A DNA stretch of 64,000 nucleotides from Entomortierella parvispora E1425 (Eukaryota; Fungi; Mortierellomycota): positions 1,984,001 to 2,048,000 of the forward strand of contig BQFW01000015.1 of NCBI GenBank assembly GCA_020891255.1, in the 5' to 3' direction. Below are positions 16,944-42,000 of the stretch, in pieces. Within the stretch, counting starts at the first letter, position 1. Each line of letters opens with the position of its first letter. Position numbers and translations under genes: made by a program. The notes under the pieces were generated by a model that was not told the DNA's origin, ran no database searches, and saw nothing but the letters and a program-made list of their open reading frames with translations.

Positions 16944-19900
16944 ATGCCTGCTCCGGCCCGGCCTCTGCTGCATCCCGGCGCGTCCATCCAGAGCTCAGGG
17001 CCTGTTGTGGACCCCGCATTCACAGCCGCTGAATTCGACGTCAAGGCCTGGATCAATGCCGCCCTCGAAGCCGTTCCTCAGCAACAGCAAGGAGGCAATC
17101 TCGACAGCAACAACAAGAGTGGACCTTCACCTTCATCGGCTTCTCAGGGAGACCACAAAACCTCGGCATCGGTGGATGCTTCGTTGGATGCTTCCTTGGA
17201 CCTGCTTCAAACGCCCGCGCTCGACCCTGTTCTCGGTACATACCACACGACCTAAAATGCACTTATTGTCCATTGAATTTCATCCATGTGCTGACTCGGT
17301 TGGGGGTTTCTTTCCTATCTGTTATAGATGGAAAGGATCGGGACGATGCAGACTCACTTGTAGGAACTCCTCCGACACTGGGTTCCTCAGGAACTAACCA
17401 GCAGCAGCAGCAGGCGACAGCTACAACTACGACAAAGAGTCAGACTAGCCTTTTGACCCAGCATGCGACAACCCATCTTACAAAGCTTCATTTACTGGCC
17501 AGCCAGACCTCTGCTGCCCTTGCATCCACCACACAGGACATGGTAAAGCTTCTCCCACGATTGACTCACGAGCTTGATCAACTTCGCCAAGAAACCAAGG
17601 TCCTTCAGGAAGGTATTCGACTTGTTCGCTCAGACGTTGGTACGGTCGAATCATCTGATACAGTTCAGGCTTTGGATCGACTCAAATACCTGGATCTCGT
17701 CAAAACTCGGATGGAGGCCACCCATTCCGCCCTCCGAGAAGCCGAAAACTGGCGGAATCTCGAAGCTGAAGCACAGGAGATTTTGGCAAAGGGCGATTTC
17801 TCTCGCGCTGCCACCCGTCTGTCTGAGGCCGAGAGGTCCTTAGTCGTGTACAAAAACACCAATGTAGAAGGCGATCGTATGGCTCTCTTGCGCGTACTCA
17901 AGGATCAATTAGAGCAGCAAGTCATGGGCAAGGTCAAAGAGGCCTTGGAACAAAAGGACACGGTGGCTTGCCAGTCTTTGATGGCCGTGTTTGGACTCAT
18001 TGGGCGACAGGAAAAGTTTCAAGAGTATTACATCTCCCAAAGGCGCGCACCTTTGATTGCACATTGGAAAGAGCTGTTCAAAAACATCCACCAGGGGCCA
18101 CGGACCGGCGCCACTGCACCTGCTCCCCAAAGCGCAGGAGACTCAAAGGACTTTGTCAATGCCTTGCCAAAGTTCTATATGGACGCCTCCAACTTGCTCC
18201 ACGACGAGTTTGCATGGATCACTAGTATCTTTTCCGACCCTTCTGCGACTATTCATAACCTGGTGCACGACGTTTTTACGCACCTTGACCCAACCATGCA
18301 AACTGCATTACGGGATGTTGCTAGATCCCAAGGCGACGAGGGCAGCCTACCACTCTTGATTGCTGCCTTTGTGGCAACAGAATCGTTTGGTGTCAGGATG
18401 GAGCGGATTGTCTCGCAACCCTTGGTCGGCAACTTGCGTGAACACAGCCCAGGCAGTGGTGGCTTCTCTGGGCGATCAAGATCAGGAACTCTAGTTCAGG
18501 ATGCTGCACAAAGAGACGGCAGAGGTGTACATTTGGGACGATCCTCATTTAGCCACGAGGGCCTTGATATTGGCTCTATCCACGATCCACATGAGTGGGC
18601 CTACATCCTTTATGAACCCTTCATGGTATACCAGCGCGACTATGGAAAGCTGGAAGGCGCACATTTGCGAGCACTGTTGACAACGGCCATCCCAGCCATG
18701 GCCACATACCCAACCAAAGCAGCAGGCAGTCGCGAGATCAGCAAAGCCAGTTCCCACCTTGTCAAGATCATCACCAACACCAACAACATTGCCTTTAGTC
18801 TTGCTGAAGGCGCCATTGGCCGGTGTATGCGACTCACGCATGGATTCGGTACCCCCGGATTGGTGGACTGCCTGAATGGATTCTTTAACAACATTATGGA
18901 CCGGTATACCGAGATTTTGATGGAGTGTCGACAGCGGTCTGGATTGCAGATCGATGGTGTTACTGGTGAAATCAAGAGACAAGAGGACTATGGACAGGAT
19001 TCGCGACCTAGCTCAAGACTCGGTAACAAACAATCGACACCTGACGATTCAGAGGATTCCGAGGGATGGGATGACGATGTGAATGAGCAAGACCAGAGGC
19101 TGCTGCATATGGGACTCCGACTTATTGTGCTTTGTCGTCAGCTCTGCCTGCGATTGGAACAGTTGGACATCAAGACTAAAAAGAGTCTTCGTGCGGTGGA
19201 GCATCTTATCAAGTCAGACGCCAACACCCATGCTGGCACAAGCCCGGACCAAGGGTCTTCAGGAAGTGGTTTGAAGATGACTGCTCAGCCGCCTAATGCG
19301 TCGATTGCATTGCTGCAACAGTCCAACTTGAACAGCTACCGACTATCCGAGATTTTGGAGATGGTCAAGAAGTCTGCGGCTCTTGAAGGACAGTCAGGAG
19401 CAACAATGACGAACCTGGGTTTGATCAGTGATGGCGTCTCTACGTTGGATCGACTTTCAGCAGAAACGGACTTGGGATTGGAACCAAAAGCTCATCACCT
19501 CTTCCGACAGAGTCACCAGCGTGCTGTACAACTCACCAAGCTTTGCCAACGATTTATTTTCGACACGCTCTATATTCCACTTGTCCGACCTTTGGCTGAC
19601 GTGGCCCTTCTCCCATGCTGGACCGAGGAACAAGGAACTCCCAGTGATGATTTGATGGGACCTCGCCGTATTCATCAGAGTACGTTGGGGGGAACGAGGA
19701 CTGATGTTTTCCGATTCAGATCAGGTCCAAGCGAATACATGGAGGAGCTGTTGAAGCAGGTTGTTGGTTTGCCACTCACACTGGAGACCTATGAGGGAGA
19801 TGCTGGTCTGAGGTTCGGTATCCACGCTCTGCCTTATGCAGACAGGCCTGCTGATCAACGCGAGCAGTCGGAAGAGGCGACAAGAGCTGAGGAAACAGCC

Positions 19901-20650
19901 CTGAATTCCAAAGAGGATAACTCTGAAGGTCTGGGTGTTGGAGAGTCTGAGCTGGAATCAGGATCTTTGACGCATGGAGGCCAGAGTCCTGAGGGCCAGA
20001 CTTATGAGGAAGAAGACGACGTTGCAATCATGCACCGATGGATCACCTCCCTCTTGCGTGCGGCTATGCATACCCTTGTTGAACGTCTGTACGATCCCAA
20101 TTTGGGTCAGGTCAAATCATCCCCAGCGACATCCACACCCCCTACAAGTCAGCGCAGTCGCTTTGGCTCTCCTGTCCCGGCGTCTTCCTCACCTAGCGGA
20201 CTCTCTGGCCCGTCTTTTGGAGGCAACGCTCGCTCAGCTTCTGCAAAGGAGCGCCATTACTTGACACGCTTGTCGGACTCGGGTGCCAAGCAGTTGGAGC
20301 TGGATCTTGGACATTTTGTCAATACCTGTTTGAGCTCCCTGGCCATTGAACCCACGCCAAGCATCCAGTCGTTGATCAAAGCCCTGGGTATGAGCGAGGC
20401 AGGTCTTTTGATGGCGATGCAGCAACAGCGAGAATACCTTGACAACCGTCCACCCCAACACAAGGAAAGTGGAGAGTCAAGTCCTTCCTCATCAGCAGAA
20501 CCAAGTTCAATCGTCATCCCTGGAGGACCGGTCTTGCCCACTGTACTGGCCATTGGAGACGAGGAAAGCGAAGAGAAGCAGATGGAACAGGAGCACAAGA
20601 TCTTTACATGGGTTGCTCAACTGAAAGGAATTGCCACCCCACAGCCATAA
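16944..20650 (+). CDS. COG7: Conserved oligomeric Golgi complex subunit 7 (long form), 2 exons
   Basis: FDVKAWINAAL, LPRLTHELDQL, LDLVKTRMEATHSALREAENWRNLE. Intron 17236-17327 joins the two ORFs in frame. Confidence 0.85.
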
Positions 20651-20860: not shown

Positions 20861-22225
20861 TTAGAGCTCCTTCATGCTTCCAAGAGGCTCCCGGGCAGTG
20901 CGTACACGTTTCGGCACAGACCCCACACTGTCTACCATCTTGCCTTTGCCCTTGCCGGAAGTTATTGTCGTTGCCGTTGCCGTCGTGGCAGCCGTGGCCA
21001 TTGGTCCTTGAGTGGCCGCCGTGGTATCTGGATCCTTGAAGACCTCAAACTTCCACTCACTTGGCCAGTTCTGGCGCTCCTTCTCGTCGACGAGTCTGTA
21101 CTCGCCTTGGTGCCAATGAAAGATCTGCCCAGCGACTTGCTGGGCCTGTCTATTGAAGGCCACCCTTTGTGGTTCAATCTCGCATTCGATCACGCGCCGA
21201 ATGGCCGCAGCGTCCTCGTCTGAAATATGAGTATTGTCGTTGCTACCACCTGCACCCGAGGCGACAGAAGACGAGCCAGCATCGGGCTTGGCCTTGGCGG
21301 AGAAGGCACCCAGGGCAGCCTTCTTGAGACTTTCCTTTGAGAGAAGCAGACTGGGATCGGGTCCGTAGGTATTCCAAAGACGGGGGGAAATGGCACCCAA
21401 GGCTGCTCTTCTGGACCGGGTAATAGGGCCAGCTCTGCACACGGGTTGAGGGGCCAGTGAAGAATGACCTTCTGTCCTCTGGAGACCAGCGTTGTCGTGG
21501 ATGGCCTTGGGGGTGAGATTTTCCTTTTCGGACCCTGGTGAACACAGGGCCAAATTGATAGCATCCTCGTCTTCCAGCATGGCCATATCTTCTTGTGCCT
21601 GGAAAGGGTCCATCATGTCTGCTGCCGTTGGTGTTTTGGGGGCTGGTGCCGTGGTCATGAACGGGTTCTCGTCCTCGTCCACCACCATAGTAGGACGGGC
21701 CATGAGGGCAGGGCGACTACTACTATTGCTACCACCACTACCACTACTGATACTACTTGAAGAGAGTGGTACCCTTGGACGGGTTGCAGCTGTGGTTGGA
21801 GCAGGACGGACTGCGTGTCGCCTATCAGACTTGACCCTCGGTGGATAGGGGGCAGAAGAAGGGTTACTGCTGCTTCGGGGGCTGTTGCTCCTGGCAAGGA
21901 GACCCAGACGCTCAAAGGGAAGACTCGAGTTGGGGGCAACGTGTTTGCGCGAGTCGACCATGCGGATAGAAGGGGTTCCTGGAGTTGTTCGACGTGTGCC
22001 ACTGGAGAGACCCAGCAGGTTCATGTCCCTGGAGAGGAGCTTTGAAGGTGTGCAGTCATCGATGGACATTGCTCTTTCTGTGGAGGGGGTGGTCTGTTGG
22101 AAAGGAGTGGTGGCAGAGGCAGAGGCAGAGGCTTGAGGTGTTCGAGGGGTGCGGAGGGTGCGGAGGATACGAGAGGGAGCCGGGGAAGGAGGAAGAGAAG
22201 GTGAAGAGTTGCGCTCGCGCCCCAT
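20861..22225 (-). CDS. Orphan 454-aa, mostly disordered protein with KEN, D-box and ABBA motifs; candidate APC/C regulator
   Basis: Intronless ATG-to-stop ORF rich in S/T/P, with motifs EKENLTP, RAALGAI, KFEVFKD and REPLGSM. The ORF is well supported; the function is inferred. Confidence 0.75.
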   Translation of the reverse strand: MGRERNSSPSLPPSPAPSRILRTLRTPRTPQASASASATTPFQQTTPSTERAMSIDDCTPSKLLSRDMNLLGLSSGTRRTTPGTPSIRMVDSRKHVAPNSSLPFERLGLLARSNSPRSSSNPSSAPYPPRVKSDRRHAVRPAPTTAATRPRVPLSSSSISSGSGGSNSSSRPALMARPTMVVDEDENPFMTTAPAPKTPTAADMMDPFQAQEDMAMLEDEDAINLALCSPGSEKENLTPKAIHDNAGLQRTEGHSSLAPQPVCRAGPITRSRRAALGAISPRLWNTYGPDPSLLLSKESLKKAALGAFSAKAKPDAGSSSVASGAGGSNDNTHISDEDAAAIRRVIECEIEPQRVAFNRQAQQVAGQIFHWHQGEYRLVDEKERQNWPSEWKFEVFKDPDTTAATQGPMATAATTATATTITSGKGKGKMVDSVGSVPKRVRTAREPLGSMKEL

Positions 22226-22320
22226 GGTGAATTGGCTGACTTTAAGTCAAATGAGAGTATGTGTGAGGGACAGCGAGGGTTGACAGGGGACGGAGATGTG
22301 GATTCAGCGGATGTGTGGGA

Positions 22321-22366
22321 GTAGAATAGTAGAATAGTAGAAGAGTAGAATCAGTAATAGTAGAAT
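22321..22366. repeat. Degenerate (GTAGAATA)n octamer repeat upstream of the 454-aa gene
   Basis: About five imperfect units. Confidence 0.8.
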
Positions 22367-22632
22367 GTGGGTTGTGTAATGAAGGATGTGGATGGGGATG
22401 AAGAGATGAAGGGAAGGGCGCAAGATCGGAATCAATATCAACAATAATCGGTCAATCCATGGGAGCAAGGGGAAAAGGAGGGAGGATGATGGTGGTGACG
22501 AAGCGGTCTTTTTTTTTTTTTTTTTTTTTTTCTTTCTTTTCTCTCTCTCCTTGCGTGCATTGGGGCCAATGATGGGTCACGGGACGGGGAATGAAATTGA
22601 AAATGAGGGTGCACCCTTAATAAGGAGGAGTC

Positions 22633-23084: not shown

Positions 23085-23189
23085 CCTGTGCACCGGCAGG
23101 AGAAGTCTGTGTTGTTTGCAAGGGGAGAAAGAGAAAGCAGAGGTCCGTTCGTTTTGTCGCACAGTTCTCTTCCGTCTCCTTCCTTCTCT

Positions 23190-23263
23190 CCTTCCTTCCT
23201 TCCTTCCTTCCTTCCTTCCTTCCTTCCTTCCTTCCTTCCTTCCTTCCTTCCTTCCTTCCTTCC
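23190..23263. repeat. (CTTC)n microsatellite, about 18 units
   Basis: Perfect tetranucleotide run. Confidence 0.98.
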
Positions 23264-33000: not shown

Positions 33001-36000
33001 TTACTCGACTCTGCGCTTCTTGATGGTGGTCAAGCGGATCTTGTCCTTTGCAAACTCCTTGGTCTTGAGCTGACGCTTGCGAGACTTCATCTCGTTCTTC
33101 TGGATACGTCTGCGAGCACGGGCCTCGGGGTCGTTGATGGCCTGCATGACACGCTTCTGCTTACGCTCCCGACGGACCTCCAGAACGTGCTGACGGACAT
33201 TGTTGTAGGCCGCAAAGTAGTCGGTGGTACCCGCACGCTTCTGGACCAGATCCAACACCTCGGATCCCAACTTCTTGAGTTCCTCTACAAAATCATCAAA
33301 AAAAAAAAAAAAAAAAAAAAAAAAGGGGGGAGAGAACATGTTAGATATCTATTCAACACTGCAGTCATGTTCCATTCACAAATCCACATTGAAAATAATT
33401 TCTTACCAATTTCGTCACCCTTGGCCGTCTCGTCATTCACAATGCGGTAGATGGGTGCGATGATGGGGATCAAGTAGGGCTTGAGCTCCTGGGTATGGAT
33501 ATGGGTGGTGATGGCGGCCATGGCCTGGAAGATACAGGTCTGCTGGATCACCGACCTGTTGTTGTTGTTTCTCATGGCAGCACCACGCGAAAGGAAGGAC
33601 AGGCGCTTGATCAACCAGTACAGAGATCTCTTCACGGGCAACTTCTCCTTGGTCTTCTTGTCCTCGTCCTCTCCTTCTTCCTCTTCCTCCTCTTCCTCCT
33701 CTTCCTCCTCGTCGTCTTCCTCCTCCTGCTTATCTTGAGCAATTTCGAGCTCATCAGGAAGGGCATAGAAGCACTTTGCGATAAAGAACAAGTTCTTGAC
33801 AATCTGACCACCCAGGTCCTTGGACAAGAACTCACTCTTCAATTGCTCGCACAACTTTTGAGCCACAGCCTTCAACATCTCGGGCGACAAGACAAGTTCG
33901 GGCGAAGAGCCGTCCTGAGGGGATCGGGTAGCAGGGTCAATGCCAGCAAAGAAGACACCAAAGAGGCGTGTAGCCGACAGACGAACCCAAGCGTGAGGGT
34001 GCAACATGTGCTCACGGATCAAGGGCCACAAGGTCGTGACCTCGGTCGAGTTGATCACCGAGGGGAATTGCTTGACCAGCTTGGTAAAAGTGTTGAGGGC
34101 ATAGTAACCAACCTCCCACTCGGCATCCAAATCCATGGCATCCTGTCCCTGGTCCTCAAACTTGTCCACCTCGGCCGCTTGCTCCTGAGCTTCCTCCATG
34201 ATCTGCAAGCTCGACTCGAGCGCAAATCGGAGACGGGGCACCAAAGATGGAATCTGCTTCTTGAACGCAGGACCAAAGGCCTCGATCGCGAGACCATAGA
34301 CCTGAGAGGCTGCACGCTGGAGGGTGCGCTGCTCCGTCTGATCGAACCACTTGGCCAAAAGCACATACGAGTTGTCCAGCTTCTGTCGGTTCATTCTCTG
34401 CAGCAAAGACTTGATCAATGCACCGGCCATCTCGCGACACTTGCTAGAGTCATCGTTGACGAGCTGCATCACCAACGCCAAGAAGAAGAGCTCGGCGTAC
34501 TCCATCAAGACCTCATCCGCAAACTTTTGGATAATAACGTGCATCATCTCCATCACGGACTGACGACCGCTCTCAAAGACATAGCTCAAGTTCTTGACCA
34601 AGAAGTTCATCTGGTTCTTCAGACGACCACGACCATGTGGGTAATCCAACAAGAACTGAAGAAGAGCACGACGGCACTCCTCGCGGGCCTGGTGAGACTG
34701 GGAGGTGACCATGATGCTTGCAATGTTCTCCATGATATCGTACATCTCAGGAACCACAAATTGGCGCGAGACAATGGCACGAATCAACGAGAACGTGGTG
34801 GTCTGTCTCTCGGGCTCCTCGAGATCGGGCTTGATCATCTCCAACAGGAAAGTCAATTGGTTCGATTTGAGCTCCGTCTCCTTGACTTCACGAATGGCAA
34901 TGGCCAACATGCGGAAACAGTTCTGGGCCAGCTCGGACTTGGACGAGTTTTGAGCCTTGAGGAGAACAAACGTCTGCTTGAGGACCACAGGCAAGTTCTT
35001 GGTGAGGGAAGGCAGCTTGAGTTTGGCCAGGATACACATAATCCTGAGGGACTGCTGGATAACGTCGGGGTGCTTGGCAAACACACCGTTACCAACAATC
35101 TCAACAAAAGGATCAAGCAACGACAGCTGCTCAGGTGAGCGCACATCAAACTTGTTGCGGGTCAAGGACGCACGGAAAATACCCAGACCAAAAGCGACAA
35201 AACGGTGAGCGTTGGCGGGGAAGCAGTCCATGGTCATCTGAGTAGGGCGTCGAGTGTCGACCGTGTAGTTGATCTCCTGGCGCGACTTTTCCTTCTTGAC
35301 TTCCTCCTTGGTCTTGGAGAGAGCGAGATTCTGGGAAATGAGTCCGTGACAGAAGATGAGCATCTCCTTGGTCTCAAAACGAGGGTTGTTGTTGAGGCCT
35401 GTTGCCAAGCGACGCATCACTTCGTCGACCTTGCGCATGACCTTCACAGCCTCTGACTCGCTCAAGAGTTCCTTGATAGGGATCATGATAAGACCCATGT
35501 TCTTGAACTCGATGATTCCGGCCATGAGCTCGAAAGAGTGGAAACTGAGGTTGCTCTTGGCTTCCTTCATCTTGCCAGTGATCTCCTCAGTCTCTTTTTC
35601 CACACCGGTTTCTCCAAAGATATCGTTGATGAGAACATCGACAATCTCCTTCAGGCAGTAGTCGAGGTCTCCAACCTGAAGCGTGGGCACCAAGTGGGTC
35701 AACATCGAGTGCAGGGTGAAACCGAGCACATGGAGTTGGTAACCTCGAAGGAGAGCACCCTTCATTTCCTTGAGAATGAAGTTGAAGTAACCAGCTCCGA
35801 GGAACATGGTGATCTTGACCAGGGTATCGCGGGTGGTATCACGGGCCTCTTGCTGGCGACTCTTAAGAATCTGGCAGACAGAGGTCAAAAGACCGGGGAG
35901 GTTGGTCCGAAGAGAGATGTCAGGGAGGGCCTTGAGCAACTTTGTAATGGCCAAAGCGACAGGGACACGGATCATGACACTAGCGTCGTCACGGTTGGTC

Positions 36001-39000
36001 AAGTAACGATGAAGTTCAGGCAACAACTTCTTGATGACAGTGTCATGGATGCGACCAGCGAGAGCAGCAGCAGATTCTTCCGCCGACAGCTCAACCTCCA
36101 TAGCGTCCTCGTCCTCAACATCATCGTCAGCTTCCTCCTCTTCCTCCTCCTCAGCCTCAGGTGCCTCCTCCTCTTCCTCGGTAGCCTTGCTGCTAGAGAT
36201 TTCGGGCATGGGGGCTTCCTCCATCTCAACATCACCGTCCGCTTGTCCGCGTCTGGACTTTGTTCCCTCCACATCGGGTCTCTCGTTATCCTCTTCGGAC
36301 GCCTTCTTGCGATCAGCCTTGGGCTTCTGGACTCTGACCTTCTTGCGAACAATGGCAACAGCATCCTCGGCCGAGACTTCAACATTCTTGATATCAAAGT
36401 GGAAGTTGTCGAGGACGGTGATGACGGTACGGACCAAAATCTTCTCCATCTCAGCCTTGCGTGGGATAAGTTTCAAATAACTCTTCAACAACGCGTAGTA
36501 AGATCCCCAGGGCAGTTGCGAAGTAATCACACCCAAGGTGGCGATGGTCTCGTTCACCAAGTTATGGTCTGTGCTCTTGTCAGCCTCAAAGATGAAATGG
36601 GCAATCAGAGGAGCAAAAACTTGAGTAAGCGATGTGGGTCGGAATGTTCCCTTGGCGCACTCTTCCGAGAAACGGTTCAGGGCACGAATACGACGATGCA
36701 ACTGGATGTGGTAAATGTTGGTGAAGAACGAAGCTTCCTCGTCACCTCCAACCAACAATGGAGTCATGTCCGAGAACTGGACCTGATCAGGACAGCGCTT
36801 GACGGCATGAGCCAACACGGCCACAAACTCGTATCGCACCAATTCGATAGGGGACTTGAATCCCTTCTTGAGTCCAGGGTAGACGACATGAGCCAACAGA
36901 CCACGGAAAGCCTCGAACTGAGGATCCTCCTTTGACAAGTCTGCACACTGGTCGATAAATCGGGTAAGAGCAAAGGTAGAGTTGCTGCGGATGGACATTT
37001 CTTCAGGGTCCCGGATATAGAACAGCATGTTGTGGAGGACAGGCAGCCACTGACGGTCATTAAGATCCTTGTAGAGAGAGTCCGTGAGGAGGTTGAAAGC
37101 ATCCATGCGGCGGTCAAAGTCGGGAGTGTCGATGCGAGTCGTAGAGAACGCGTTCAGCTCAGCCACCAGCTTCGAAACAGCTTCGAATGACGTGTCAATC
37201 TTGGCAAACTCTGACATGATGTCGACCAGCAACACACGACAGTCTCGGGCCATCAAGGTCGAGAAGAGAACCACCATATGGTTGAAGTACTTTGTGAACA
37301 GAGCACTCTCAGGCGTCAGATCAGGGATGATTGGCACAAAGTTGACAATGATACGAAGAATATCGGCCTTGGTCCTCTCGGGTACCAGTCTGTGGTTCTT
37401 CTTGAGGCTCGGCAACAAAAGATCGACGAGCTTGATGGCCTGAGGACCGTTCTTGACGTAGGCTGCGACTTGGGAAAGAATGGCAATCTCCCTCTTGGAG
37501 AAGCTGTCCTTGCCAAACTTGGCATCCTCACTGCCCTTGGAAAGGACAATCTCAAGATTATCCAGGAGGCAATCGGTGTATGGAATCAAAACCTGTGTGG
37601 TCAAGGGCTTGTCGACCTCCTCCTTTTCTTCGAAGCAGTGCGACAAAATGTCCTCGCAAATCTCGAGAACCATAGAGATGACAGGATCGCGGACCTTCTT
37701 GGCAGAGAGACATCCGTACAACCTCTCAAGGACCTGTTTGTTGTACTTGACAAGGAACAAAACATACTCCTTGCGAGCAGCCCAGGTTGAGAACAATTCC
37801 ATGATGGCGGAAGGCGCTTGAGTGCTCTCAATATCCAAACGAGGAATACGTCTGTCGAGGAATGACTTGAACATGGCGGGCACATAGGGCTCAAAGTCAA
37901 AAGTCGTAATGGGCAAGCTGAACATCTTGGTGATACGCTTGATACCGAACTGACGCACATCCTTGAGTTGCTTGATTTGCAAAGTCTCAATCATACCCTC
38001 CTCAGCGCCAAGCATGGATTGGTCGCCAGCATCCAAATCAATCCTCTCTTGAGCTTGGTTGACCATGCAGAGGACTGCGGTCAAGAGCTGGGTGATGAAG
38101 GGAGCAATGGTGGTTCCGAGCATCTTGATGACGTCCTCGAGAATGTTGAGGAAACCGACCTGCTTACGGAGTGGACCAACACTTCCACGCTCCGCCGTGC
38201 TGTCTTCGCCAAAGGCAAACTCGCCATCAAAGATTCCAGCCGTGCCAAAATCGAAGGGACTGAGCATGAGCGAGATGAAGAATCCAAGTTCCTTGGAAGC
38301 GCATCCTCCGAGAGCGGTCAAAACGGCCTTGCGTCTTGCAGACATACCAGCCTTAGCCGATCCCTTTCCTTTCCTGGCAATCATACATCCGTAGAGCAAG
38401 CGGATGATGATGGGCATGACCTCATCACGATGCAAAGAGCCGATACTGGAGCTCTCTCCTTCAGCAATGATAAAGGTCGAAAGTTCATCACGGAACTTGA
38501 CGTCGTCCAGCATGTTCTTGAGGTTATCCTGGTATGGGAGCAATGCAGGCGACTTGAAGGTGAAGAGACAGTTGAGGGCCAAGGTTTGCAGAGGGGCGTC
38601 TCCGATCGTCAACAAGCGGAGATATAATGAATGCATTGTCGAACTCTCAAAGGTCTGCTTAGGATTCTTAAACTTTGCGAACAAAGCCAAGAACAGATGA
38701 AGACGATCCTTGGTATCCTTGGCGGTTTTGGGCAGGATCTGTAGCTTCTCGTTGGCATCCTCCTCCTCCTCCTCATCCTCGTCGAGATCACGTTCATCCT
38801 TGCGGTTCCAGGCGGGCTCGTATTCGGTTTTGATAAACTTCAAAAAGACTTGGACAACTTGACGGTTGTGAACCTCGGCAATTTGAGGCACCTCTGCAAG
38901 GGCCTTCAAAATCAGGCCATAGTAGTTCCAGTAATCGAGACGGTCCGATCCAGGCGCGTAGATCCTGATAAAGTGCATGACCAAAGCCATTCTCTGTTTT

Positions 39001-42000
39001 GAAGGGTCGGTGAGTTCGAACGAGGCCTCGTTTGCGCGGCGCATCTTCTTGAAGTTGGGACAGTCAAAGTTGATGCCCTTCTTCTTTGCCTCCTTGTTCT
39101 CTCCACTCAATCCAAGTCGATCCTGGGCGTCGTGGTAGTCTGCAATGGCTTGTGCAGAGAGTCCACTCTCGACCAAGAGAGCTTCGTCCTCAAACCGCTG
39201 GATCTCTCCAAAGAGCAAGTCCCAGAATGCGTCCGAGTGAAGCTCTGCGGTCTTGATCAACAATGTTGTGGCATCGGCCCACAATGGCTGGAAGTTGATG
39301 GTCAGAATTCCGAGACAGAGACGCATGGCAACCGTCTTGTAAAAGTCGTTCACTCTTCCAGAGGCAATCATGGTGTGGAGTTTCCGGATTTGCATCGTCT
39401 TTTCTCTGTAAGTGTCGACTGTCACGTCGATATCCTCGATAGCCAAACACTGGAAAAAGATGTCATTCTGGGGAAGCGCATTCTGCTGAGCGTCCTGATC
39501 GACATAGGGGATGACATCAAAGCTTGAGAGAATTTGCAACGTATGAAGTCTCCGTCTGTGCTGCATCGAGTTGATGTTCTTTTCCAGCTTTGGGTACAGC
39601 TTTCTCAAAAGGGCCTCTGAGAACTTCTTTCCAGCAGCGTTGCTAAGGAAATGGGGCTGCAGATCAGTACATGCTATCTAGATTGTCATATTCACAGACG
39701 ACAACAACAAGCGACAATCCTTACCTGTCCTTCAGAATTGTGCAGTACTTGGCCACACCTCTTAGTACAACCTCGTTAGAGCCGTAGTTGAGAAGAGCAT
39801 CCTCAACAATGATGTCCCAGTGCTTCAAAAGCAAGTCTGTTCCTGCGGTACCATTGCGTTCGCTAGTGACAGCCAAGACCTCGATGGCCTCGCCGAGAAG
39901 GATGTGAAGTGTTGCCATAGATGAACCCTGGACAAATGGTCGTTTCTGGAGTGTGATGGTCTGATCTTCCTTTGACAATGCAGCAAGAAGAGATCCCAAA
40001 AGCTTCATGATGGCGGCCGAGGTGTTTTCGAATGACGAGGAGATCTGGGGAACGATGGACAAAGCTGCAGTGACGAGTGCAATGCGAGGAATAAGAGATT
40101 GGTCCTCATCATCAAATGAGAGGTTGCCGAGAGCGTCAGCCTCAGTCTTCCAGTCGCAGGGCTCGGACAAGATGCGCAAGATTCCATCCAGAATTGATTC
40201 AGAGCTTTCCTGCGCTGCCTTTGCTGACTTCTTTTTGCTGGGGGCGGCCTTTCCAGCGGGGAATTTAAGAAGACCATTCGAATCAACAGTCGCCGCGATC
40301 ATTCCTGGAGTCAACACCAGGACGTCTGAAGTGAGAAGAGTGGCGAGGAAGACGATGATCTGGCAAGAGTGCTCAGGTCCCCAATTGCTGGCGCAGTACT
40401 TGACGATATGGGGAAGCAAGATCTGGGTGTAGTGGCTCCACTTCAAATGAATAAGAGAAACCGAGAACGCCAAGACCGTAGACACATCCTATGAGACAGA
40501 AAAATATTAAATAAGCAACTGACTCAGTCAATACAACTCCACCTTTCATCTCATCATTTCATTCATACCTTGTGCTTGTAAATAGAATCCAATAAAAGTC
40601 CTCCTGGGAAGAGTACGCTCTCCAATGGCGAATATGCGAACAATGAGCTGGAGAGCTTCATCATTTCCTGGATGACCACTGAAGGAGCCTGCGAGTTCTC
40701 AGCCAAGGCTAATGAGGAGACCTTGATCGCCTTTTCGTAAATCTTGACAAAATCTAAACAAAATAAAGTCAGTCATAGGAAGATCTTCATATCTTTCAAT
40801 GAGAGTACAAAAGTTTGATGCCATACCTTCAATACGGTTGGCCTTTCTGACAGACACACAGACATGGATAAGTGCCAATGACTCGGCAATATTGAGCCAT
40901 CTCTGCTCTGCCTCCTTGGGGGTTTTGGCAACCTGGTCCACACTGGAAGTCAATTCTGACAAAAGCATTTCGCAGACTCCTTGGAAATGCTCCTTTGTCG
41001 AATAATGGACCATAAGGACAAGAGTCTTTGTCAAGGCTCTGAATGTAGCGTTTTGATGCAGTCCTTCCTCGGTAGCCTCCACATCGGTTTCCTGCTTCAA
41101 AGCTTGAATAACCTGACGAAGGACAATGTCCACTCCTCTGTGCTGGAACTGATTTCCGACAAGCTTGATGGTCTCAAAGAAAAGCTTTGCAACGCCCTCC
41201 ACAAATTCCTCTGTTGGTGAGTCGTGCAAAAGTGAGAGAATATAAGTCAGGATGACTTTGAGATGGTCGATAGGTGCTTTCCGGATGAGGTATGAGAATG
41301 ATTCTGCTGCAAAGTTGCGGATATATGGCTTTTGGATGTTGTCTTCTCCGAGGTAGGGTGCAAGGAGTCTAGAAAATAGCATAAAACTGTAAGAAGCTGA
41401 TAACCACAAAAATATGCCAATGTTGCGGCAGAGTCATTATTCATACTTGAAGACAGGGCACAGATCTGTCCTGAGCTGCTCAGAGTATTTCTTGAATAAG
41501 GATGCTATGCAGTTGAATGCCCACTAAAAAAAATCAAGAAAAAAACGTGAGAAAACTGTCGTATTCCTAGCAGCTATAGAGAGTACTCGGCATAAGTTGA
41601 TCAATTACCTCAATAACTTTGACATCCCGAAAGTCCACCAAGGGCAAGATGGCCGTAAGGAGCCTATCAACATATGGGAATAGTTCCTGGTCCAGATCCT
41701 TGGAAAGTTGTGTTGTCAGGTCCAGAATAGGCTCCAATGCTAGTACGTTCCCGTCCTTCAAGTTCTTGATCAAAAGCTCGACGACTTGGTCCTTATGATA
41801 CAAAAGTTGGGGTAAAGTCTGGCAATAGCTCTTGACGTCCAGGCCGAAGCGAACAAAGGGTGCTGACAAGTTCAGCTCCTTCCACTCCTCGAGGGCGTCA
41901 TTAAAATGAGATCCGGTCGCAACAGTCGCGCTTTCCTTCAGTCCCACTTGACGGGTGATCTTGATCTTGAGCTGATTGACACGGACATTGAAGCTTTGAT

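Follow-up and report, generated by a model that had tools for sequence, protein, structure and literature searches.

This report concerns a stretch of 64,000 nucleotides from the fungus Entomortierella parvispora E1425 (assembly GCA_020891255.1, contig BQFW01000015.1, positions 1,984,001 to 2,048,000 of the forward strand), called the window in the following, and within it one reverse-strand gene that encodes a disordered protein carrying a KEN box, a destruction box (D-box) and an ABBA-like motif, three classes of short motifs that bind APC/C (anaphase-promoting complex or cyclosome) co-activators. The open reading frame (ORF) is intact and uninterrupted, it comprises 454 codons plus the stop codon in a single-exon coding sequence, and the database holds an identical protein of 454 amino acids (entry P0001). 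The window protein can be aligned over its whole length, from the N- to the C-terminus, with two close relatives, one from a JGI metagenome and one from a Logan assembly, both of which are 74% identical to it, are encoded by a single exon and share the same start and stop. The ratio of nonsynonymous to synonymous substitution rates (dN/dS; Nei-Gojobori), calculated for the window gene against these two relatives, amounts to 0.12–0.15 overall and to 0.01–0.04 in a C-terminal block covering amino acids (aa) 340–400. The gene is under purifying selection, and the overall dN/dS of about 0.14 shows that it is functional and coding. Tail to tail with it, with the stop codons approximately 210 bp apart, lies the gene for subunit 7 of the conserved oligomeric Golgi complex, COG7 (Pfam PF10191, E = 4.7e-62, aa 59–382), as one ORF of 1125 codons, which is listed from a TTG, its true ATG start being located further inside. 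This convergent neighbour is kept in the JGI metagenomic relative (L001) and not in Linnemannia hyalina, of which the orthologue is a single exon of 738 codons in another gene neighbourhood. The positions of all features are collected in Table 1.

Table 1. Features of the window and of the studied protein, with positions counted from the first nucleotide of the window (AF2, AlphaFold2).
Feature	Residues (aa)	Position	Strand	Remark
Studied gene	1–454	20861..22225	-	
T-P-R repeat cluster	23–31	22133..22159	-	T26, P27 and P30 nearly invariant; conservation of this residue window 0.76
T-P-S-x-L-L-S island	59–65	22031..22051	-	T59, P60, L64 and S65 at least 90% conserved
D-E-D-E-N-P-F island	183–189	21659..21679	-	DEN at aa 185; conserved as D-E-x-x-N-x-F
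KEN-box island E-K-E-N-L-T-P-K	233–240	21506..21529	-	KEN at aa 234–236 (21518–21526)
D-box island	266–285	21371..21430	-	core R-A-A-L-G-A-I at aa 273–279 (21389–21409), then S280-P281 and W284-N285
Helix and beta-hairpin element with A-F-N-R-x-A-Q	336–385	21071..21220	-	predicted by AF2; dN/dS 0.01–0.04; contains invariant residues
E-I-E-P-Q-R	349–354	21164..21181	-	fits the minimal separase site ExxR, window clade only
W-P-x-E-W-K-F-E-V-F-K-D-P island	387–399	21029..21067	-	ABBA-like F-E-V-F-K-D at aa 393–398 (21032–21049)
Basic stretch G-K-G-K ... K-R-x-R	424–442	20900..20956	-	G426, K427, G428, K429, K439, R440 and R442 at least 90% conserved
Terminal R-E-P-L-G-S-M	445–451	20873..20893	-	REPL at aa 445 (20882–20893); not a conserved degron
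COG7 gene		17273..20650	+	
8-nt repeat		22320..22366		6 copies
Homopolymer run		22509..22540		32 nt; T on the forward strand, A on the strand of the gene
(TCCT)n microsatellite		23177..23263		about 22 copies, 95% match
Very long ORF		33285..39608	-	2107 codons
Overlapping ORF		33495..35138	+	
Overlapping ORF		35538..36935	+	

The protein belongs to a family of its own. A word-indexed search with the window protein retrieved 13 relatives, and a profile search over 1.84 billion representative proteins yielded 15 matches, each at E < 1e-30 and all from Mortierellaceae. When the region from the KEN box to the ABBA-like motif was used as query in a word search at E ≤ 10, 34 matches were obtained, of which the weakest reached 8.5e-19, with a gap from there to the threshold of 10. 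In total the family counts approximately 41 entries in the databases, and the named genera among them, 10 in number, all belong to Mortierellaceae (Mortierella, Linnemannia, Podila, Dissophora, Haplosporangium, Lobosporangium, Gryganskiella, Entomortierella, Actinomortierella and Lunasporangiospora), and every named match is annotated as 'hypothetical protein'. The family has a sharp border and, within the reach of HMMER, does not extend beyond Mortierellaceae. The term orphan, by which a sequence-only reading of this DNA had described the protein, is therefore too strong, as it is a member of a restricted family and not a singleton. This lineage-specific family is undescribed, while its kind, i.e., disordered proteins with APC/C degrons, is already well known. 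In an alignment of 21 sequences spanning the 10 genera, those from outside the clade of the window protein share 26–37% identity with it, Gryganskiella reaching 49%, and full-length orthologues measure approximately 700 aa compared with the 454 aa of the window protein.

The chance expectation for the motifs was determined from 20,000 composition-preserving shuffles of the window protein. A KEN box is found in these with P = 0.03 and a strict ABBA motif with P = 0.005, a bare RxxL has P = 0.93 and is thus expected anyway, and KEN, RxxL and ABBA jointly occur in 2.5e-4 of the shuffles. A script check located KEN, RAALGAI, FEVFKD, REPL, DEN and 14 S/T-P sites exactly where the sequence-only reading had placed them, the number of S/T-P sites being only a modest excess over the shuffle mean of 9.5. 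The conservation of the motifs was judged by the 21-sequence alignment and by pattern counts in the 41 family entries. While the mean column conservation is 0.55, the highest-ranking windows of nine residues are the D-box tail (0.92), Q-N-W-P-S-E-W-K-F, which overlaps the ABBA-like motif (0.90), A-F-N-R-x-A-Q (0.87) and E-K-E-N-L-T-P-K (0.83). The columns M1, K234, E235, N236, T238, P239, P259, R270, S271, R273, L276, S280, P281, W284 and N285 are invariant, and W387, P388, E390, W391, K392, F393, D398 and P399 are each conserved in at least 90% of the sequences. KEN-x-TP is present in 39 of the 41 entries, the exceptions being a C-terminal fragment of 150 aa and a partial gene model of Mortierella alpina, the pattern RxxL[GD]x[ILVM]SP is present in 40 of 41, that is in all entries that cover the D-box region, and W-K-F-[E/D]-[ILV]-[FHY]-x-[D/E] is found in all 38 entries covering the ABBA-like region. 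In the partial M. alpina model (P0026) the residues E-T-E-S-V-Q, at approximately aa 340–350, are joined straight to the D-box region and the KEN segment is skipped, which is probably the artefact of a mispredicted intron in the gene model, splicing out of the KEN box being less likely.

The conserved islands can be compared with the published consensus sequences, which are [DNE]KENxxP for the KEN box, RxxLx[D/E][hydrophobic]xN[N/S] for the D-box and Fx[ILV][FY]x[DE] for the ABBA motif (PMC5717348). E-KEN-L-T-P is an exact fit to the first, and the D-box core R-x-[A/T]-L-[G/D]-x-[I/L], conserved in all entries that cover it, fits RxxLxx[ILVM]. Variation within the islands is limited to positions for which the consensus makes no demand, namely KEN+1, position 2 of the D-box and positions 2 and 5 of the ABBA-like motif, and position 3 of the D-box stays small (A/T). 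Both degrons are accompanied by proline-directed sites: T238-P239, a minimal site for cyclin-dependent kinases (CDK), occupies KEN+2 and KEN+3 in all 21 sequences, and an equally invariant S-P, S280-P281, occupies positions 8 and 9 of the D-box, which lie in the segment that contacts Apc10 (PMC5717348). The distance between KEN box and D-box is 37–85 residues, about 50 in most orthologues, and that between D-box and ABBA-like motif 120–220 residues. In two orthologues an additional ABBA-like F-T-I-Y-[Q/P]-D is found upstream of the KEN box, namely in P0020 from Actinomortierella ambigua (aa 440–445, 69 residues before KEN) and in P0024 from Mortierella sp. AM989 (aa 274–279, 26 residues before KEN), and degenerate versions such as H-V-I-Y-P-D and S-I-Y-V-D stand at the same place in several others. 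Two further elements that the sequence-only reading had counted among the degrons did not prove conserved. The terminal REPL, taken for a D-box, has been retained by none but the window clade and a few others; Linnemannia, Podila and further genera lack it or have it altered. The 'DEN' variant is retained as D-E-x-x-N-x-F, with N-N-L-F in most orthologues, and not as DEN. A lack of motif conservation in orthologues had been named by the sequence-only reading as a ground for refutation, and this check did not refute it: the KEN box, the D-box and the ABBA-like motif are conserved islands in a disordered family of approximately 33% identity.

The disorder is extensive. AF2 run with the family alignment gives a mean predicted local distance difference test score (pLDDT) of 42.9, with 381 of the 454 residues below 50, and the region of KEN box and D-box (aa 190–290) also stays below 50, i.e., it is predicted to be accessible and disordered. 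Modeling of the C-terminal block with its own alignment results in a helix at aa 336–364, a hairpin at aa 369–378 and a further short helix, with pLDDT values up to approximately 80 and a predicted template modeling score of 0.24, and the ABBA-like stretch that follows the helix-hairpin is predicted as coil with a pLDDT of approximately 55–63. The earlier observation that the protein lacks a catalytic domain holds, as Pfam finds none and AF2 predicts mostly disorder. Pfam returned no match at all for the window protein (E ≤ 1) or for 13 family members (E ≤ 5), profiles of the family and of the C-terminal block searched against PDB sequences gave chance-level hits only (an E2 N-terminal tail, designed proteins and cytochromes), Foldseek found nothing in the PDB at E ≤ 0.001 for the AF2 model of the C-terminal block, and the feature and structure neighbors in the ESM Atlas all remained below 0.85 and below a template modeling score of 0.2, respectively, and were treated as noise.

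That the KEN box, the D-box and the ABBA-like motif are among the most conserved islands of a divergent disordered family supports a ligand of APC/C co-activators. We consider it somewhat probable that the window protein is a nuclear, disordered, Mortierellaceae-specific cell-cycle protein that acts as a CDK-gated ligand of Cdc20 and/or Cdh1, most likely as a substrate, and from the conserved motifs we infer APC/C binding, degradation, gating by CDK and nuclear localisation. In such a mechanism the E-KEN-x-T-P island would bind to the top face of the WD40 propeller of the co-activator and the R-x-A-L-G-x-I island would enter the D-box receptor formed together with Apc10, while the F-E-V-F-x-D stretch may supply a third contact of the ABBA type. 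The protein would then be ubiquitinated and destroyed in mitosis or G1. Phosphorylation of the T-P and S-P sites on both degrons by CDK would delay recognition until CDK activity drops or a phosphatase acts, and such a gating of APC/C recognition by degron-proximal CDK sites is documented for the yeast securin Pds1, for Cdc6 and for Dbf4 (PMC5717348). The cellular task of the protein itself would be located in the other conserved islands and in the C-terminal helix-hairpin block. Among plain substrates, vertebrate cyclin A and yeast Clb5 are comparable in that they combine a D-box and/or a KEN box with Fx[ILV][FY]x[DE], which raises the affinity for the co-activator. They differ from the window family, which has neither a cyclin fold nor any other domain, and in cyclin A the ABBA motif is part of the N-terminal degron region, whereas the ABBA-like motif of the window family lies C-terminal to the degrons.

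Several points weigh against a co-activator ligand. In the searches run no known APC/C substrate proved homologous to the family, position 9 of the D-box is an invariant Pro while Asn is the preferred residue, and a scan of the upstream region for MluI cell-cycle boxes (MCB), Swi4/6 cell-cycle boxes (SCB), forkhead sites and cell-cycle genes homology regions (CHR) gave three MCB cores compared with about one expected, which is non-significant. The ABBA-like hexamer is embedded in an invariant island of 13 residues with two Trp right after the predicted helix-hairpin, and it may belong to a larger interface for another partner; more generally, conservation of short motifs can have unrelated causes. 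In a rival reading the islands serve partners outside the APC/C, for instance those of a chromatin, centromere or replication factor under the control of proline-directed kinases, and the motif matches are coincidental, which we regard as rather improbable. It would account for the at least seven islands that have no degron reading, i.e., T-P-S-x-L-L-S, L-P-F, D-E-x-x-N-x-F, A-F-N-R-R-A-Q, W-P-x-E-W, G-K-G-K and the tail R-Y-D-F-R-E-R-R of the orthologues, and for the D-box island running on to S-P-W-R-W-N, more than a D-box needs, the ABBA island being over-long likewise. The nearest language-model clusters are also disordered nuclear proteins (SLD2-named and Scm3-containing), at chance-level scores. 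Coincidence, however, is difficult to reconcile with three classes of degrons placed in conserved islands and varying at consensus-free positions, for which the rough chance is < 1e-4, and neither Pfam, PDB sequences, Foldseek nor the Atlas offers an alternative family.

If the protein is a co-activator ligand, substrate and inhibitor cannot be separated by sequence alone. A pseudosubstrate inhibitor in the manner of Acm1, Mes1 or Mad3, in which KEN box, D-box and ABBA motif fill the three receptors of one Cdh1 or Cdc20 molecule and thereby block substrates, appears to us quite improbable. All three classes of receptor-binding motifs are indeed conserved in one disordered chain, a combination typical of Acm1 and BubR1/Mad3 (PMC5717348), and CDK sites are found in the same chain here as in Acm1, the Cdh1 inhibitor of budding yeast. 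The second ABBA-like motif ahead of the KEN box in some orthologues recalls the ABBA-KEN-ABBA cassette of BubR1, and in the orthologues of A. ambigua and Mortierella sp. AM989 the order is ABBA, KEN, D-box, ABBA. The upstream motif, however, is degenerate or absent in most members including the window protein, and the family has no TPR domain, no GLEBS motif and no Mad2-related context as BubR1/Mad3 have. In Acm1 the ABBA motif is located upstream of the KEN box and of D-box 3. The order in the window protein is KEN, D-box, ABBA, while the ABBA motif of Acm1 is near residue 65, and plain substrates, cyclin A and Clb5 among them, carry the same set of motifs (PMC5717348). Besides order and spacing, the window family differs from Acm1 in being 2–3.5 times longer and in the long distance of the ABBA-like motif from the D-box within an island of 13 residues; there is no sequence sign of resistance to ubiquitination. 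No homology to Acm1, Mes1, Mad3, securin or any other known family was detectable by Pfam, by PDB sequences or by the profile search over 1.84e9 proteins.

The third alternative is that the family is the securin of Mortierellaceae, with the C-terminal block binding separase and a Glu patch, either I-[E/Q]-P-x-x or E390-W-K-F, acting as the pseudosubstrate, while the D-P-[E/D] after the ABBA-like stretch would take the role of the LPE/VPE exosite element. We judge this unlikely. Securins show no similarity between lineages and are known by conserved KEN and D-boxes, disorder and a conserved Glu patch (PMC6690013), and conserved KEN and D-boxes, disorder and a Glu-containing patch are all present here; this lineage has no annotated securin, and all family members are 'hypothetical'. 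The likeness to Pds1 of S. cerevisiae, Cut2 of S. pombe, vertebrate PTTG1 and plant PATRONUS/RSS1 extends to lineage restriction, to proline-directed sites next to the KEN box and the D-box, recalling the CDK sites of Pds1, and to a downstream segment with an invariant Glu. In human securin the pseudosubstrate E-x-x-F-P is followed by LPE, and VPE is the yeast version (PMC6858450); E390-W-K-F ... D398-P399-[E/D], in which E390 is invariant, resembles the human layout, although D-P-E differs from L/V-P-E. The degrons of securins are N-terminal (PMC6690013), whereas those of the window family are mid-protein, at aa 234 and 273 of 454 and at approximately aa 295–420 in the orthologues of ~700 aa. 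In the I-[E/Q]-P patch most orthologues have Gln in place of Glu and one has Lys, and the Pfam securin model does not match any of 13 members at E ≤ 5. The window protein is also 2–3 times longer than known securins.

E-I-E-P-Q-R within the helix was considered as a separase site of the fungal type (acidic, aliphatic, E-x-x-R) and rejected for want of conservation of its Arg and Glu. Of its residues I350 and P352 alone are kept, the first Glu is replaced by V, T or I, E351 by Gln in most orthologues and R354 by S, Q, A or T outside the window clade. ExxR is the minimal site of separase. Against a securin it also counts that ExxR-like strings are ubiquitous and that the true Arg at P1 in the ExxR of the window protein is a residue that turns known securins into substrates (PMC6858450). 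Of the earlier proposal, an APC/C pseudosubstrate inhibitor or a securin-like protein, motif conservation sustains the part of a co-activator ligand, while the more specific identities suffer from the lack of homology to securin, Acm1 or Mad3, the mid-protein degrons, the exchange of Glu for Gln and the lack of conservation of two of the five motifs.

Beyond the degrons, the T-P-R cluster near the N-terminus may represent sites for proline-directed kinases, and the window protein has a single full CDK consensus site, T-P-S-K within the T-P-S-x-L-L-S island. L-P-F is a further conserved island in the N-terminal half, and the basic stretch G-K-G-K ... K-R-x-R is probably a nuclear localisation signal. 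Most orthologues carry approximately 100 additional residues at the C-terminus, which end in the basic tail R-Y-D-F-R-E-R-R-M-L-N-E-P-L-T-P-R-S-R-R-C-G-A, seen in the C-terminal 25 residues of P0004–P0012, P0014 and P0016–P0020. Neither the window protein nor its two closest relatives possess this tail, and the DNA downstream of the stop codon of the studied gene does not encode it. Its D-R-Y start is loosely like a C-box and its E-P-L...R-R end like the basic motif of shugoshin, neither of which is backed by any tool. Shugoshin, prompted by this tail, was rejected since there is no Pfam match and no long N-terminal helix or coiled coil, and the tail is missing from the window clade. Scm3/HJURP was likewise set aside, as Pfam PF10384 did not match, the Atlas neighbors stayed at chance level (0.76) and the profile search of the PDB retrieved no chain of HJURP/Scm3. 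A reading of Q-R-V-A-F as an RVxF site for protein phosphatase 1 was rejected, as its Arg occurs in the window clade only.

The surrounding DNA contains several low-complexity elements. The 8-nt repeat AGTAGAAT probably belongs to the 5' leader or promoter of the studied gene, and the homopolymer run is found approximately 285 nt ahead of the start codon. Further upstream the intergenic (TCCT)n microsatellite produces, in several frames, long ORFs that are spurious and contain E-G-R-K and L-P-S-F repeats. Elsewhere in the window a very long ORF is overlapped by two large ORFs on the opposite strand.

Anaphase regulators, among them securins, Acm1 and Mes1, change too rapidly to be detected by homology searches, and to our knowledge no anaphase regulator of this kind is described for Mortierellomycota. 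It is doubtful, though a real chance, that the family is the long-missing securin of Mortierellomycota or else a new, independently evolved inhibitor that occupies the KEN, D-box and ABBA sites of a co-activator. If it were a securin, the W-P-x-E-W-K-F-E-V-[F/Y]-x-D-P-[E/D] island would combine separase pseudosubstrate and exosite element. Either outcome would be useful rather than field-changing, and would be one more case in which anaphase control was solved independently at the level of sequence, in a fungal lineage of early divergence. The family illustrates that conserved short motifs can point to cell-cycle regulators, a principle already well known, so that the gain is a candidate and not a new concept. 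Genetic tools exist for Mortierella alpina, an industrial producer of oil, and a single-copy, lineage-wide protein with unchanged motifs and degron-adjacent CDK sites offers a testable entry to APC/C-controlled events in Mortierellomycota.

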